Shown here: one piece after another, positions 4,670 to 57,933 of the stretch
Numbering within the stretch: position 1 is the stretch's first letter
How the letters are laid out: every line of letters begins with the position of its first letter
Assembly: GCA_013416795.1 (NCBI GenBank)
Contig: RQSC01000003.1
Location: 204,163-268,162 of the forward strand
Length of the DNA: 64,000 bases
Direction of reading: 5' to 3'
Source of the DNA: Prasinococcaceae sp. CCMP 1430
Taxonomy: Eukaryota; Plantae; Prasinodermophyta
Made by a program: the position numbers and the translations under genes
The notes under the pieces: model-generated
Databases searched by the model: none
What the model saw: the letters and a program-made list of their open reading frames with translations, nothing else
Told to the model about the DNA's origin: nothing

Positions 4670-5471
4670 NNNNNNNNNNNNNNNNNNNNNNNNNNNNNNN
4701 NNNNNNNNNNNNNNNNNNNNNNNNNNNNNNNNNNNNNNNNNNNNNNNNNNNNNNNNNNNNNNNNNNNNNNNNNNNNNNNNNNNNNNNNNNNNNNNNNNNN
4801 NNNNNNNNNNNNNNNNNNNNNNNNNNNNNNNNNNNNNNNNNNNNNNNNNNNNNNNNNNNNNNNNNNNNNNNNNNNNNNNNNNNNNNNNNNNNNNNNNNNN
4901 NNNNNNNNNNNNNNNNNNNNNNNNNNNNNNNNNNNNNNNNNNNNNNNNNNNNNNNNNNNNNNNNNNNNNNNNNNNNNNNNNNNNNNNNNNNNNNNNNNNN
5001 NNNNNNNNNNNNNNNNNNNNNNNNNNNNNNNNNNNNNNNNNNNNNNNNNNNNNNNNNNNNNNNNNNNNNNNNNNNNNNNNNNNNNNNNNNNNNNNNNNNN
5101 NNNNNNNNNNNNNNNNNNNNNNNNNNNNNNNNNNNNNNNNNNNNNNNNNNNNNNNNNNNNNNNNNNNNNNNNNNNNNNNNNNNNNNNNNNNNNNNNNNNN
5201 NNNNNNNNNNNNNNNNNNNNNNNNNNNNNNNNNNNNNNNNNNNNNNNNNNNNNNNNNNNNNNNNNNNNNNNNNNNNNNNNNNNNNNNNNNNNNNNNNNNN
5301 NNNNNNNNNNNNNNNNNNNNNNNNNNNNNNNNNNNNNNNNNNNNNNNNNNNNNNNNNNNNNNNNNNNNNNNNNNNNNNNNNNNNNNNNNNNNNNNNNNNN
5401 NNNNNNNNNNNNNNNNNNNNNNNNNNNNNNNNNNNNNNNNNNNNNNNNNNNNNNNNNNNNNNNNNNNNNNN
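4670..5471. other. Assembly gap (N run); other gaps at 21303-21528, 50245-51184, 52214-53029; single N at 19337, 22490, 35920, 48052, 57144
   Basis: N characters in the sequence. Confidence 1.
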
Positions 5472-21302: not shown

Positions 21303-22095
21303 NNNNNNNNNNNNNNNNNNNNNNNNNNNNNNNNNNNNNNNNNNNNNNNNNNNNNNNNNNNNNNNNNNNNNNNNNNNNNNNNNNNNNNNNNNNNNNNNNN
21401 NNNNNNNNNNNNNNNNNNNNNNNNNNNNNNNNNNNNNNNNNNNNNNNNNNNNNNNNNNNNNNNNNNNNNNNNNNNNNNNNNNNNNNNNNNNNNNNNNNNN
21501 NNNNNNNNNNNNNNNNNNNNNNNNNNNNGGCGAGCCGCGGGCGCCCGCGCGCGCGCGCGCCGCCGCCGCCGGCCCGAAACCCTCTTCGCCGTCCATCAAT
21601 CTCAATCTGAAAAAGAGGGCGCCCATCGGAACGAAGGCGAAAGAAAAAACAAAAACATCAAAAAGTAAAAAGAAAAAATACTGCGTATGTACGTACGTAT
21701 GTACTGTACAAAAACAAAGGCGAGCGTTCATAAAAATCGTCGCCCTCGCCATGCGGATTCACGCCCGCCTAACAATTCGTTCCGAGCGCGCGCCGCTCGG
21801 CCGGGGCGCGCGGGTTTGAGGGCGCCGCGGATGGAGGCTCGAGCGAGGGACGGGGCGCGGCGGGGGCGCGCGTCGTCGAAACGGGGGTGGGCGCCGCGCG
21901 CGCGTTACTTACTGTAGGGTTCGCGCGGCGTCCCCTGGCCCGGTGACCCTGTTCCGCGCCGCCCGACCCCAAACGCGCCCCGAAATTGCCAACCTGAACC
22001 TGCCGACGGCGCGAGGAATGCGGGCCGGCGCTCCTGTGCCTGCGTGCGTGCGCGCGTGTGCGCGTCTGCGCGTCTGCGCGTCTGCGTGCCTGTGT

Positions 22096-24250: not shown

Positions 24251-26156
24251 TCAGCGGCCGAAGAGGCTCCCAAGCATGCGCTGCAGCCTCGTGGCGCGCC
24301 CCATCATGTTCGCAAGCATGCGCTGCCATGCAATCTTCCGCTCGGCCACTTGCCGGACGGCCGGGATGCACTCCTCTAGACACGCGCTGATGACACGCAG
24401 GCGGGCGAGAGGGCCATCGCTGGCCATGCACTCTGGGCGAATCTCCTGCGAGGGCGCGCGTTGGAAGAGTGGGCGTCACCAAACATGTGCGAACGGGCGC
24501 GCCCACACAGGCGGAAGGTGCGCGCGTCGACCAGCCCGCGTGCGCGCGCGCGCGAGCGCGCAAGTCTCTCACCTCGGCTGCGCCCAGTACCGGCAGCGGA
24601 TTGAGCACCTGGCACAAGTGCCACGACAGCTTCTCCGCGCGCTCATGCGCCTCTCTCCTGTCGACACGCCCACGCACAGGCGGCGGCGGACGCGGGCCAG
24701 CGGCGTCCAGCAGCGCGCGCGTGCTGCCGCCGTAGTGCTGCTTCAGGTACCCGACATTCCCGCGCCCCACCTGCGCTCGACATGCGCGTTCGTGCGCGCA
24801 TGCGTCAGCGGAGGCACCGGCAGGTAGCGCGCGCCGCCGCGCGCGCGCGGCGGAGCGCACGCATGCGGCGATTGCAGAATGCTCTGGTGCGCCCCACGGA
24901 CCTCTCCGAGCCACTCTTCGAGGAGAGAGACAGCGCGCTCGCTCTCTTCGGCGAGCGCCGCGCAGTATTTCGCATCGTCCTGCTCATCATCGCCCTCTCC
25001 GACTGCGTCCTCGCCGTCGTGCGGGGATGCAACCGACGCCACGTAGAAGCCCGCAGGGGCGAGCGCGGTCGTGACCACCCGGAAGCGCGATCGCGCGACG
25101 CACGCGATAACAAATCGGCCGTCGGGCAGTGCGCTGACCTCGGTGATTTCGCACACGCAACCGTGCCGCGCACATGGCATTCGCGCCTCATCGTCTGCAC
25201 GCGCGCTCGCGCGCCATCTGTCAGCCAATCCCAAACAGCGCACGCGCGCGAATGAGGCGCGCGGGCGAGCCTGCCCGTCGCACGCGGGCGAGGGCATGCG
25301 CGTCTTGCGCGGCGCGCACCTCCGCTTTCACCACCGCGCGGCGGCCCGATCATCCCGAAAGTCCTGTCGTTCGCGAGCACGAGCTTCATGAGCGCCCGGT
25401 AGCGGGGCTCGAACACGTGCAGGCGCGCGGTCTGCCCAGGCACGATGGGATCACACACGAAGAGCGGCATCGAGCAATCCTCAGGCACGCCGGCCGCGGC
25501 GCTGCGTGCGCGGCGCGCCGCGCTGCTTTGAGCCTCTTCCTCGAGGTCGCGTGCGCTCGACTCCTCCGGGAACGCCGCGCGAACGGCCTGAGAAGCGCAT
25601 GGCGCGGGCGTCAGCACGCGATCGCGCGCGCTGGGCGGCGTGCGCGTGGCGGTATGCCCTGCGCCGGTGGTAGATGTCGCACCTTGTCGAGCGCGACGCA
25701 CACGGGCGCTGCGGCGGGGTCTGCGTAGTACGCCGGCGCTCGGCACACGGGGCAGCGCCGCGCCGCGCGCAGCGCCAACGCCGTGCACTCGCGGCAGTGC
25801 GCGTGGCCGCATGGCAGCGCAACGGGCCGGTGCAGGAGCCGCAGGAGGCCGACGCCTTGGTATGTGCCCTGACATCGTCGAGCGAGGTCAGGCCTTTGGA
25901 CGTGATCTTCGAGGTGATCTTGCCCTTGCAGACGCCGTTGCAGCCGCAGATTTCCGCATCATCCGGCAAGGCTGCAACGGCCGCCATAGGGTCCAGGGGG
26001 GCACCCCCCTGGTAGGCCTGGCCGAAGATCAAGGTATCGCGCATCTCGGAGATGTCGGTCGCCTTTTTCTTGAGGTCGTTGAAAACCCCCCTCGGCGAGC
26101 GCTCCCGCGGCGCTCCCCTCGCGCGCGCGCTTCGGCGACCCCCCGCCGCCGCTCAT
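24251..26156 (-). CDS. LON peptidase N-terminal domain and RING finger protein (LONRF-like), multi-exon; RING disrupted in this assembly
   Basis: PVALPCGHAHCREC...RCPVCR RING half; MPLFVCDPIVPG...LHVFEPRYRALMK...FGMI, GCVCEITEV..LPDGRF...RFRV LON substrate-binding domain. Confidence 0.82.
25827..26083 (-). other. nirB: Fragment of bacterial NADH-nitrite reductase large subunit (BFD-like [2Fe-2S] region) embedded in the LON-RING gene
   Basis: FNDLKKKATDISEMRDTLIFGQAYQGGAPLDPMAAVAALPDDAEICGCNGVCKGKI...DDVRAHTKASASCGSCTG, recognised as alphaproteobacterial-type NirB; lower GC than flanks. Confidence 0.9.
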
Positions 26157-26384
26157 CGCCGCCGGCGCAGCCGCACACCCTCGCCCCACGCGCGCGCTGT
26201 GGCGCACTCACGGGACGAGGGGCCGCAAGCAGCTATCCAAAACACGCATACGAGTTCGCACTGTGAAACGCAGAACCACGCGTGCGCTGCGTGGACTAAT
26301 TTCGGTTTTGTGAGTTTGAACATCAACACGCATGTTACCATTGCAAAAAGGGTTTGCTCTGTCATCCGCGGCCGCGCGCGGCCG

Positions 26385-28060
26385 TCAGAGCGCGTCCGTG
26401 GGGCCGGCGGCGGCTCCTGCGACTGCGCGCACGTGCGCGCCGAATTGCCTCGACACGAGCGAGCGCTGAATGTTGGCCTGGTGCCTGTCGATGTCAACTC
26501 CCTGAAGGACGCATGCGCCCACACCCATGAGAATTGACATAGCCACGAGCCCCCATCGCAGCGAGCCTGTGGCTTCGTTCATAATGAGCATCACAAGCGG
26601 CGGCACCCACACGAATGCGGTACTCGACATTGTGCTCAGGCCTGCGCACTCCGCCTCGAGGCCGCCAGGCGCGCTCTGAGCAAACAGCAGCATCTGCTGC
26701 GACCACGCACCGCCGAGCAACACACCCCACAAGACGCCGAATATGGCGGGCAGGATCAAGTCACCCACTTCGGCGTCGCAGCCCTCAACCACCTCGTTGT
26801 CACCGCAGAGGGCGTCGCCCAGTGGCGGCGGCGGCGGCGAGACCTCAAGCCCACCGCCCTCGCTGGTCGATTCCGACGCCACAGTCGTGCACTTGGGTAG
26901 CACCGCCCCCCCGAGTGACGTCAGGATGAACGTCGTAAATAACAGCGCCTGAATGGCGCGCTTGATGCCCACCCGCTTGCGCAAGAAGTTGCCCACGTGG
27001 CTGCCCGCGGCGGCACTCACGATGGCGAGGCCGAAGACGATGCTCACGACGCTCGCCTTATAATTGAGCTCGGACGTCAGGAAGATGGACCCGAGGGACA
27101 CGACGGCGGCTTGCGCGGGGTCGCTTACCATGACGTGCATGAGAAACACAAAAAAGTCGGGGTAGTCCTTGCGCACCTGCTTCCACAGCGACACCATGCG
27201 CCGAAACGAGAAAGCGACCAAGCTCTTGGTGCCTTCTGGCAACTCGTGACTGGGCTTGCGGGCCTCAAGCTTTTGCCACGCCAGCGCCACACAAAGCAAG
27301 CCAGATGCCCCGCAGAATAGGGCGGCGAAGCGCCCCTGCCAGAGGTAGTTCAGGCCCGCAATTTGCACCACGCCCACGTTCACGATCACGAACACGACCT
27401 GCGCGCGCGCAGCGGCCGGTGCGTGTGCGCGAGCGAGCGGGGGGGAGGAGGCGGGGAGCGAGCGAGCGCAAGCGTCAGCCACCTGCTCGTGGGCGCGGCA
27501 AAGGACGAAAGAGCGCCCAGCGCGCGCACCTCTGCGATGTAGAGCGTGGTGTAGCCGTTCCTGTTGATCCTCGCCAGCTCATCGTGGCTGGTGGTGAGCT
27601 CCGGCAGCCAGGTTGACTGGCCCGTGAGCAGCATGGCGTAGCACACGTTGAAGATGAAGAGAGCGAGCAAGGAGATGGCCACACCGGTATCATTAGGCGC
27701 TAGCACGACGCCAAGCACCGTCGCGCCGAACTGCACGAAGCTGGCACCGAGAAGCAGCGGCTTGCGCAGGGTGGTGTAGTCGCACGCCGCGCCGATTGCC
27801 GGCGTGAGCAGCGCGCTCGTGATGCCGGCAATCATCAGGATGCCCGGAATCAAGCTGTCGAAGTTGAGCCAGTTCCACAGCTGTCCGTCCTCGTCCGAGA
27901 TGCACTCGGCGGCTGTCAAGAGCGCAGGCTGGAACTGCACCGAGATGAAAACCACGCCCGCCGCTTGGGCGATGCGCAGCAGCATGTAGCCCCAGACCTC
28001 CGGGTTGCGCCCGGCGGCCGCGGCGGCGACGCTCGCCGTTTTGCCATCCTCAGCTTCCAT
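26385..28060 (-). CDS. MFS transporter, UMF1/Atg22-like; exons 28060-27530 and 27398-26385
   Basis: About 12 hydrophobic segments, LLTPAIGAACDYTTLRK loop motif, LPELTT, APGGLEAECAGL; phase-0 GT-AG intron. Confidence 0.8.
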
Positions 28061-49833: not shown

Positions 49834-52029
49834 CTGCATTGGGTTCAGAGCCGGAGCGAGACGCGTCAGCGCCAACGTCAGCGTGCGTCTGCGCGCGCGC
49901 AGGGAGAGAAAGAAAGAGAGAGAGAGGCGCTGCGGCAGCGGCAACAGCCGCGCGGCTGGTGTTCGCCACCCCGTCGTCTCGCGCGCGCCTATGCGCGCGC
50001 CTCGCGCAGCGCGGGTAGGAGCGCCGACCAAACGTCCTCTCGGGAGCCACTGCCGAAGCACAGCACCTCACCCACGCCTACCGTCCCGCAGCGCGCTGAC
50101 ATTTCCCCCCTCGCGCGACGGCGGTGGCAGCGCCGCCCCCCTTCCTGCCGCCCCCATTCCCGCCGCCGCCCCCGCCCGCGCGCGCGCGCGCTGCGCAAAA
50201 AAGAGCGCGCGCGCGCCGGTGCAAAAAAGCGCGCGCGCGCGCGCNNNNNNNNNNNNNNNNNNNNNNNNNNNNNNNNNNNNNNNNNNNNNNNNNNNNNNNN
50301 NNNNNNNNNNNNNNNNNNNNNNNNNNNNNNNNNNNNNNNNNNNNNNNNNNNNNNNNNNNNNNNNNNNNNNNNNNNNNNNNNNNNNNNNNNNNNNNNNNNN
50401 NNNNNNNNNNNNNNNNNNNNNNNNNNNNNNNNNNNNNNNNNNNNNNNNNNNNNNNNNNNNNNNNNNNNNNNNNNNNNNNNNNNNNNNNNNNNNNNNNNNN
50501 NNNNNNNNNNNNNNNNNNNNNNNNNNNNNNNNNNNNNNNNNNNNNNNNNNNNNNNNNNNNNNNNNNNNNNNNNNNNNNNNNNNNNNNNNNNNNNNNNNNN
50601 NNNNNNNNNNNNNNNNNNNNNNNNNNNNNNNNNNNNNNNNNNNNNNNNNNNNNNNNNNNNNNNNNNNNNNNNNNNNNNNNNNNNNNNNNNNNNNNNNNNN
50701 NNNNNNNNNNNNNNNNNNNNNNNNNNNNNNNNNNNNNNNNNNNNNNNNNNNNNNNNNNNNNNNNNNNNNNNNNNNNNNNNNNNNNNNNNNNNNNNNNNNN
50801 NNNNNNNNNNNNNNNNNNNNNNNNNNNNNNNNNNNNNNNNNNNNNNNNNNNNNNNNNNNNNNNNNNNNNNNNNNNNNNNNNNNNNNNNNNNNNNNNNNNN
50901 NNNNNNNNNNNNNNNNNNNNNNNNNNNNNNNNNNNNNNNNNNNNNNNNNNNNNNNNNNNNNNNNNNNNNNNNNNNNNNNNNNNNNNNNNNNNNNNNNNNN
51001 NNNNNNNNNNNNNNNNNNNNNNNNNNNNNNNNNNNNNNNNNNNNNNNNNNNNNNNNNNNNNNNNNNNNNNNNNNNNNNNNNNNNNNNNNNNNNNNNNNNN
51101 NNNNNNNNNNNNNNNNNNNNNNNNNNNNNNNNNNNNNNNNNNNNNNNNNNNNNNNNNNNNNNNNNNNNNNNNNNNNNNNNNNNNCAGAGGGGGGCGGGCG
51201 CGCGCGCGCCACAGCGCGCGCGCCGAGGCGCCCGCGCGGCCCCCCCTCGTCCTTCCCCCTCCCCCCGAACCCCCCGGAAGGGGGGTGTTGGAGGCGCCAG
51301 GGCGCGCGCATGTCGCACACGTCGGGCTCGAGCACGGGCATCGGCTGCCTCGGGTGCGGGGCGTCTGTGGTGCGTCGCGCTCGCGCGCGCTCGCGCGCAC
51401 TCGCGCGCGCACGCGCCGGTCTTTGCCGCGTCAGCGCCGGAGCGAGGAGCGGGGGGAAGGGGGGTTCCATGCGGGCCTCGGCGCGCGGCGTCGCGGGGGC
51501 GGCCAAGGGTAGGCGCGGGTGGGAGGCGCCCTCGTCAGCCCTCGCTTCGCTGCACTCCGCCCCCCGTCCCCGTGCGGGGCGCCTCCACGCGCGCGAGAGG
51601 GCGCCGCGGACGCTGCGAGCGCGGCGCGCACGAGCGCAAAAAAAAAAAAAAGCAACGCGTTTCGACGGTCGATTTTGTTGGCTGGTTCGTCGGACGGCAC
51701 AAAAAAAAGGCGTCGCGCGCGCGCCGCGCATTCGCACATTCATTCATTCATTCGCGCGTTTCGATCGACCGCGGTCCGTTTTTCCCGCGCTGTTTTTTTT
51801 TGTTTTTTTTGTTTTTGTTTTTTTTTGTTTTTGCTGGTGTCGCGCCCCCCCGCGCGCGCGCGCTTGCGAGCGGCGCCGCGTGCGTCGTCACAGGGTCCAC
51901 GTCGACGATTCACAGCACGCGCGCAAATACTTCAAGCGGTGCGAACAGGTTTGGGTTTTGTTCGATAGACCTTAAATATTCGAGGCATGGGGGGAGCGGG
52001 CGGGCGGGCAGCGCGCACAGCACGCGCAC

Positions 52030-52125: not shown

Positions 52126-53137
52126 ACGCTGTGGTGCACTGAGCGCGCGCGCGCGCGCGCGCCGCGCTGGCGCGCGCTCGTCGCACCGCGCTTGCGCTGG
52201 CGCTGGCGCTGGCNNNNNNNNNNNNNNNNNNNNNNNNNNNNNNNNNNNNNNNNNNNNNNNNNNNNNNNNNNNNNNNNNNNNNNNNNNNNNNNNNNNNNNN
52301 NNNNNNNNNNNNNNNNNNNNNNNNNNNNNNNNNNNNNNNNNNNNNNNNNNNNNNNNNNNNNNNNNNNNNNNNNNNNNNNNNNNNNNNNNNNNNNNNNNNN
52401 NNNNNNNNNNNNNNNNNNNNNNNNNNNNNNNNNNNNNNNNNNNNNNNNNNNNNNNNNNNNNNNNNNNNNNNNNNNNNNNNNNNNNNNNNNNNNNNNNNNN
52501 NNNNNNNNNNNNNNNNNNNNNNNNNNNNNNNNNNNNNNNNNNNNNNNNNNNNNNNNNNNNNNNNNNNNNNNNNNNNNNNNNNNNNNNNNNNNNNNNNNNN
52601 NNNNNNNNNNNNNNNNNNNNNNNNNNNNNNNNNNNNNNNNNNNNNNNNNNNNNNNNNNNNNNNNNNNNNNNNNNNNNNNNNNNNNNNNNNNNNNNNNNNN
52701 NNNNNNNNNNNNNNNNNNNNNNNNNNNNNNNNNNNNNNNNNNNNNNNNNNNNNNNNNNNNNNNNNNNNNNNNNNNNNNNNNNNNNNNNNNNNNNNNNNNN
52801 NNNNNNNNNNNNNNNNNNNNNNNNNNNNNNNNNNNNNNNNNNNNNNNNNNNNNNNNNNNNNNNNNNNNNNNNNNNNNNNNNNNNNNNNNNNNNNNNNNNN
52901 NNNNNNNNNNNNNNNNNNNNNNNNNNNNNNNNNNNNNNNNNNNNNNNNNNNNNNNNNNNNNNNNNNNNNNNNNNNNNNNNNNNNNNNNNNNNNNNNNNNN
53001 NNNNNNNNNNNNNNNNNNNNNNNNNNNNNCGCCTCGGCTGCGCCGCGGCCGCTCGCCGCGCGGCCGCCTCCCACGCAACCCGCGCCCGACAGCGCAGCCC
53101 GGGTTGCTGACGGGCAAGCGCCCGCGCCCTCCCGCAG

Positions 53138-57144: not shown

Positions 57145-57622
57145 GCGGCGCGCGCGCCCGCGCGCGCCGACGCCGGCGGCGAGGTCGTGCTCGAGGTGAA
57201 GGGGCTGTGCGCCGAGGTGGAGGCGACGGGCAAGAAGATCCTCAAGGGGGTGGACCTCACCGTGCGGGAGGGCGAGGTGCACGCCATCATGGGAAAGAAC
57301 GGCTGCGGGAAGTCCACGCTCAGCAAGGTGCTGGTCGGCCACCCCGCGTACAAGGTCACGGCGGGCACAGCGACGTACCGCGGCGACGACCTGTTCGAGA
57401 TGGAGCCCGAGGAGCGCTCGCACGCGGGCCTCTTCCTGAGCTTCCAGGCGCCTATCGAGATCCCCGGCGTTTCCAACACCGACTTCCTGCGCATGATGTA
57501 CAACGCGCGCAGGAAGGCGCTCGGCATGCCCGAGCTCGAGCCGCTCGAGTTCTACGGGTACCTCACGCCCAAGCTCGAGCAGCTCAACATGGACCCCTCC
57601 TTCCTGAGCCGCAACGTGAACG

Positions 57623-57666
<44 letters not shown>

Positions 57667-57933
57667 CTGGCGGTGCTCGAGAGCGAGCTGTCCATCCTGG
57701 ACGAGATCGACTCGGGCCTCGACGTCGACGCGCTGCGCGACGTCGCCGAGGCTGTGAACGGCCTCAAGAGCGATGAAAACGCCGTCGTCATGATCACGCA
57801 CTATCGCAGGCTGCTCGACTACATTGAGCCGGACTTCGTGCACATCATGGAGCGCGGCAAGATCAAGCAGACGGGGGGCATCGAGCTCGCCGAGGTACTC
57901 GAGGAGAAGGGCTACGCGGGGCTGTCCTCGTAG
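57145..57933 (+). CDS. sufC: Plastid Fe-S cluster assembly ATPase SufC; 5' end lost at N join 57144
   Basis: GKNGCGKST Walker A, [49 protein letters not shown]. Confidence 0.96.

Follow-up and report, generated by a model that had tools for sequence, protein, structure and literature searches.

The locus described here lies on the minus strand of the window, the term that we use for the whole 64,000-nucleotide stretch of DNA that was analysed. By its domain content the host gene is predicted to encode a RING finger followed by a LON substrate-binding domain (LONRF type), and a piece of bacterial nirB sits in its exon 1. The reading frame opens at the ATG at 26156 (minus strand) with MSGGGGSPKRAREGSAAGALAEGG, and this first frame returns from 25826 downward with PVALPCGHAHCRECT...CPVC. 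The true start of exon 1 is found at 26085–26156 (minus) and comprises the ATG together with one copy (26085–26138) of a 54-nt unit that encodes SPKRAREGSAAGALAEGG. This is the first copy of a tandem repeat whose second copy is absent from the window. The remainder of exon 1 (25683–25824, minus) carries the second half of a C3HC4 RING finger (PVALPCGHAHCRECT...CPVC) and runs up to a GT donor at 25682–25681, where the exon is likely to end. An AG acceptor is present at 25589–25588, and an intron of 95 nt is likely at 25588–25682. The downstream exons with the LON substrate-binding domain follow at 24746–25587 (minus), the borders given here being predicted ones.

The host exons were put to the profile search singly. 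The part that follows the insert matches zf-C3HC4_2 with an E value of 2e-07 over profile positions 15–40 of 40, which corresponds to the second half of the RING only. This is in agreement with the initial annotation, which had placed the ATG at 26156 and the second RING half on the two sides of the bacterial piece. A complete C3HC4 RING is not matched in any frame of the window version of the gene. The LON domain lies downstream of the RING: the segment 24746–25297 matches PF02190 (LON_substr_bdg) with an E value of 3.9e-07 and 30.6 bits (cut-off 28.7), and the preceding exon, taken as the piece from 25590 downward, matches the same profile with 2.9e-04 and 21.3 bits. Directly upstream of the RING–LON gene and on the same strand there is an open frame of 365 codons (26385–27482, minus) that by eye appears hydrophobic and membrane-protein-like.

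The stretch that is homologous to nirB spans 25826–26083 (minus strand), as delimited by nucleotide homology and translation. Read on the minus strand from 26083 to 25826 it gives 86 codons (FNDLKKK...ICGCNGVCK...CGSCTG) without a stop or frameshift, which cover the BFD-like [2Fe-2S] domain region. Residues 45–85 of the insert match Pfam Fer2_BFD with an E value of 1.8e-10 and 41.5 bits (cut-off 26). A comparison with solved structures returned weak matches only, to bacterioferritin-associated ferredoxin (E = 0.26), and nothing beyond what is obtained from Pfam. At the DNA level the homology to annotated nirB genes is gapless from 26083 to 25825 or 25827, these being the limits set by local blastn. 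Among the plasmid and chromid records of PLSDB, 169 cover at least 80% of the insert, and the best of these reach 90.3–90.8% nucleotide identity on annotated nirB; gapless matches with 100% query cover at 88–90% nucleotide identity likewise fall on features annotated as nirB (nitrite reductase large subunit). The GTDB species representatives contain 568 stretches that encode a relative. The best amino-acid identity among them is 97%, found for Rhizobium croatiense, Agrobacterium rosae and R. aethiopicum. The nearest relatives of the insert, of the Rhizobium/Mesorhizobium nirB type, thus stand at 97% amino-acid and 88–91% nucleotide identity, and judged on the sequence the strength of this match is far beyond chance. 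A nirB piece of about 86 codons with a BFD-like [2Fe-2S] domain at 25827–26083 had been recognized from the letters alone, and the searches bear this out.

The protein that the insert resembles is NirB, the large subunit of the NAD(P)H-dependent assimilatory nitrite reductase of Hyphomicrobiales (Rhizobium, Agrobacterium, Mesorhizobium). The two align without gaps at 97% amino-acid identity and at most 90.8% nucleotide identity, and the aligned part covers the BFD-like [2Fe-2S] domain including its cysteines. A complete nirB gene, with FAD/NAD-binding, BFD and sirohaem domains, is not found: the homology ends at 26083 and 25825, and both flanks are algal. Unlike the full gene, the insert consists of 86 codons only, has no start, stop or promoter and is shifted by one base against the frame of the host, and for these reasons it cannot make NirB protein.

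Compared with the nearest nirB genes, 16–33 of 26–38 differences (60–87%) fall on third codon positions, and 3–6 amino-acid changes are seen. The G+C content of the insert is 0.62, against 0.79–0.83 in the flanking exon. Signs of residence in the host, such as a shift in composition towards that of the host, decay or introns, were looked for in the insert and not found; the differences are mostly synonymous and the nirB frame is free of stops. Since the differences are concentrated at third positions and only 3–6 amino acids are changed, the insert reads as undecayed bacterial coding sequence and not as one that has been resident in the alga.

The initial annotation had described the insert as out of frame with both flanks. 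The nirB frame is indeed one base off each of them, but the statement needs refinement: the flanks themselves share one frame (net +171 nt, or 57 codons), and it is within the insert that the host frame hits a stop. The absence of GT–AG borders at the insert, which had also been pointed out, was found again. An intron-like reading of the insert was rejected on this ground and because the true sequence of the site is known from contigs.

The junctions were analysed by placing the window, the locus derived from sequencing reads and 15 nirB loci side by side. On the RING side, the 21-nt string CCTGCGGCTCCTGCACCGGCC (25825–25845, minus) is identical in the algal RING exon, where it supplies the LRLLHRP codons, and in rhizobial nirB, where it supplies the SCGSCTG codons. 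It is found once in the window. The last 21 nirB letters (25845–25825) are also true algal sequence, as algal contigs match the window up to 25845. The letters foreign to the alga, and with them the nirB fragment proper, are those at 25846–26084 (239 nt, minus), where the read-derived contigs have 68 other letters. The opposite, 5' junction (26083–26086, minus) is blunt. Algal ...GGGGGGTT abuts nirB TTCAACGAC, and the nirB part begins with TTCAAC. There is no overlap at this end because the nirB relatives have TGG before TTC.

A shared string of this length is in itself not exceptional. By a rough calculation of our own, about 400 common 21-mers are expected between a 25-Mb genome of 70% G+C and a 6-Mb genome of 61% G+C, so that finding an anchor of this kind beside a weak spot is no surprise, and across the genome it is not rare. 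What is distinctive of CCTGCGGCTCCTGCACCGGCC is its position, 21 letters from the repeat that breaks short-read contigs, as seen from the contig ends in run X1. The same string accounts for a resemblance on which the initial annotation had remarked, namely that the terminal CGSC of the insert stands where the RING CxxC should be. This does not hold: the CGSC codons overlap the algal LRLLH codons in another frame, and the true RING CxxC (CALC) lies elsewhere, within the 21 letters that are missing from the window. The resemblance is a coincidence of the common 21-nt string and not a positional replacement.

The sequence that belongs at this site can be read from independent sequencing runs. Fourteen DNA runs from nine studies contain the locus at identity, four of organism A (one 2020 study) and ten of organism B (eight 2024 studies), and in every one of them the same share of sampled 31-letter words of the locus is present, 0.76. 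If only 25846–26084 and the words crossing its borders were missing, a share of about 0.80 would be expected. In runs X1, X5 and X8 no algal contig lies on 25846–26084, and the only contig to touch this segment, at 25934–25994, is a separate bacterial one (X5 record 10). In two studies a single contig each crosses the site, X5 record 7 (13,186 nt) and X8 record 12 (13,187 nt). Both follow the order 25300–25845, 21 letters absent from the window, a copy of 26092–26138 and then 26085–26700, and in both 68 letters (21 + 47) replace the 239 foreign ones. In run X1 (2020) the RING-side contig goes on beyond 25845 for 41 letters, which comprise these 21 letters and the first part of the repeat copy, and stops there; the next contig begins at 26088. 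The word depth of the true sequence is about 70–150-fold. No contig spans both host–insert junctions, and the sole records that cross the site carry the 68 algal letters. The runs were examined as Logan contigs, in which the intact form is seen at full depth and rare variants are dropped, so that a minority form could go unseen. The insert words are missing from 14 of 14 DNA runs, and contigs of two studies show an intact RING.

Using the window pieces and the 21 contig letters, we assembled a read-derived locus that served for translation, RING pattern matching and TRF. Its exon 1 is open over 101 amino acids and reads MSGGGG, SPKRAREGSAAGALAEGG, SPKRAREGSAAGALAD and SLECALCLRLLHRPVALPCGHAHCREC...CPVC. 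It contains a complete C3HC4 RING (CALC...CGHAHCREC...CPVC), directly N-terminal of which there is an 18-residue tandem duplication (SPKRAREGSAAGALAEGG twice). At the DNA level TRF reports a period of 54 with 2.0 copies and 98% matches; the tandem unit of 47–54 nt has a G+C content of roughly 80%. The second repeat copy is identical to the first over 47 letters in X5 and has 5 differing letters in X8. The correction to the assembly consists of 68 letters in place of 239.

Because independent runs show the intact gene without the bacterial piece, an error of assembly is almost certain. Very probably the insert is a contaminant read that was filled into a repeat-induced gap, and not algal DNA. 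The two tandem copies of the 47–54-nt unit before the RING would form an exact repeat longer than the word size of the assembler, which would break a short-read assembly and leave a gap in the scaffold. Gap closing or local reassembly would then have extended from the RING side, where the last 21 letters happen to equal 21 nirB letters of a Rhizobium/Mesorhizobium-like bacterium. Traces of this bacterium would have been among the reads, as a contaminant of the culture, of a reagent or from another sample. The extension would have continued for about 240 letters along one of its reads or read pairs, and its far end would have been butt-joined to the opposite flank. The outcome would be the one seen in the window, with 239 foreign letters for 68 true ones, a destroyed RING CxxC and a stop in the frame. 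The joining program and the origin of the contaminant are the presumed parts of this scheme. Runs X1–X4 may not be the reads behind the assembly, in which case the sequenced clone could differ from them.

The marks expected of such a chimera are present: a contig break at the repeat, N gaps with traces of closing, and a join over an exact overlap of 21 nt. Nine runs of N occur in the 64-kb window, four of them of 802 (4670–5471), 226 (21303–21528), 940 (50245–51184) and 816 letters (52214–53029) and five of a single N (19337, 22490, 35920, 48052 and 57144), mostly with GC-rich simple sequence alongside. These N runs, and the five single N among them, indicate that the window is a scaffold with partly closed gaps. 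Gap filling with bacterial reads had already been the preferred reading of the initial annotation, and it is strengthened by the absence of the insert words from all 14 runs, by the intact RING contigs of two studies and by the N-gapped scaffold.

There are precedents for errors of this kind. In the draft genome of the tardigrade Hypsibius dujardini, contaminant-derived sequence was reportedly taken for horizontal gene transfer (HGT). As in that type of case, a bacterial sequence stands in a eukaryotic assembly without support from independent reads, and contaminating reads and joins would be the cause. Unlike in that case, it is one read-sized piece (239–259 nt) within an exon and not a whole bacterial contig or gene. 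A second precedent is the misfilling of gaps at tandem repeats by extension through word overlap, as carried out by short-read gap closers of the GapCloser type. The present locus is like these in the break at a repeat, the extension over a 21-nt overlap, the forced join at the far end and the leftover single-N gaps. It differs in that the programs given in PMC7455551 are NextDenovo, Arrow and NextPolish, with no gap closer among them.

The same junctions would also result if a real insertion had occurred very recently and only in the clone that was sequenced. In this case a break in the exon-1 repeat would have been repaired with bacterial DNA from the culture, using 21 nt of homology at one end and blunt joining at the other, with the loss of one repeat copy and of the RING CxxC and with the gene knocked out. 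One homology junction combined with one blunt junction is also typical of filler-DNA capture in break repair, an undecayed fragment fits a very recent event, and re-cloning of the culture from single cells (PMC7455551) makes a clone-private change conceivable. We nevertheless consider this explanation very unlikely. The insert words occur in no DNA run, and in X1 (2020) the sole contig beside 25845 has an intact first half of the RING at high word depth. The culture is described as axenic (PMC7455551), which leaves no donor. Moreover, the site is a short-read contig break in a gapped scaffold, and there is no reason why a biological event should coincide with one.

For the bacterial piece to be part of the algal genome after all, the single-cell clone would truly have to carry about 240 nt of rhizobium-like DNA, acquired via the 21-nt homology, and the runs without the insert would have to come from other sublines. 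This combination is less likely still; if it were true, bacterial DNA would have been caught in the act of entering a nuclear gene of a green alga. A similar short foreign segment with one shared-string and one blunt junction is seen in insertions of the NUMT/NUPT type and in filler DNA at repaired breaks. NUMT/NUPT-type insertions, however, occur in the organism's own reads, and the present insert is found in none of the runs that contain the locus. A genuine transfer from bacterium to alga is likewise seen in none of the independent read sets (14 runs, 9 studies). The initial annotation had offered a recent real insertion captured during repair as its alternative, and this loses its footing now that each of the 14 DNA runs with the flanks lacks the insert.

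Template switching at a common 21-mer is a known route to chimeric molecules. The insert could in principle have arisen at the bench in this way, by PCR template switching or by ligation of algal and contaminating bacterial DNA during library preparation, the product then being used as a bridging read; the error would then lie in the library and not in the software. Its length of about 260 nt corresponds to the fragment size of a short-insert library, and the assembled sequence would look no different. However, the blunt second junction needs a second independent event in the same molecule, and a single molecule would be outvoted by the true sequence at its depth of about 70–150-fold unless a gap was present, which leads back to gap filling. 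Among the explanations weighed here we regard a bench chimera as the least likely.

A donor was searched for among the GTDB representatives, the PLSDB plasmids and the metagenome contigs of JGI and other sources, with local blastn of 160 loci, and nothing above 90.8% nucleotide identity was found. On this basis the donor is placed among the Rhizobium/Mesorhizobium-like Hyphomicrobiales and not with a species. Of the public fragments, a 151-nt contig from a root metatranscriptome (run X16) comes closest, with 5 differences over 149 aligned letters. The insert stands further from marine Hyphomicrobiales such as Roseibium (84–87% amino-acid identity). The donor therefore looks like a rhizobium of soil or roots, and its residence with the alga finds no support. 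None of the 14 DNA runs in which the algal locus is found contains words of the donor. Among the RNA runs none holds the algal locus; the six with small shares of its words (0.05–0.06) are soil or root metatranscriptomes and organism runs, and X16 matches the nirB part only. It had been suggested that the piece reports on a bacterial associate of the alga whichever way it entered the assembly. With no donor words in any algal run and with soil and root Rhizobium, Agrobacterium and Mesorhizobium as its nearest relatives, the insert is no evidence on the natural partners of the alga.

The bacterial contig in run X5 (record 10) is a separate matter. It is 4,263 nt long, has a word depth of 13 compared with 37 for the alga, and resembles the window at 25934–25994 (61 letters with 4 differences). 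At least one of the 2024 cultures (X5) thus holds a nirB-bearing bacterium other than the donor, and because of this nirB-like contig the X5 culture was not free of bacteria.

Prasinoderma coloniale, which is probably the species concerned here, stands for a green-plant phylum of its own that branched off early, and its genome is searched for ancient gene transfers. If a bacterial piece the size of a read lies in an exon, it can be taken for HGT or for a novel domain fusion (BFD + RING + LON), and in the present case the insert corrupts the model of a RING–LON ubiquitin-ligase-like gene that is otherwise intact. The value of the observation is practical, as an erratum and as a warning for HGT screens. 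It also provides a pattern by which similar errors may be found, namely bacterial segments of about 250–300 nt beside repeats or gaps that are not supported by independent reads.

The genome paper on P. coloniale reports cultures that go back to single cells and whose axenicity was monitored (PMC7455551). The assembly was made from PacBio data with NextDenovo, Arrow and NextPolish and comprises 22 chromosomes without gaps, and its contigs were screened against nr with removal of putative bacterial contamination (PMC7455551). This method does not fit the N-gapped window. A contamination screen at the level of contigs would probably let through a piece of 258 nt that is enclosed in algal sequence. 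Further Illumina and Nanopore data for P. coloniale are described in a mutation-accumulation paper, in which CCMP1413 is named only for a public transcriptome (PMC11884799); these data may be the 2024 runs.

The remainder of the 64-kb window was searched for further bacterial pieces by megablast against plasmids. Apart from the nirB piece, which was the positive control, this returned only a match to sufC. The match lies at about 57220–57916 and shows 72–78% DNA identity to bacterial sufC, which encodes an Fe–S cluster assembly ATPase (Paracoccus, Azospirillum, Tsukamurella), with one of the single N positions (57144) just before it. This is probably a conserved SufC gene of the alga itself and not contamination.
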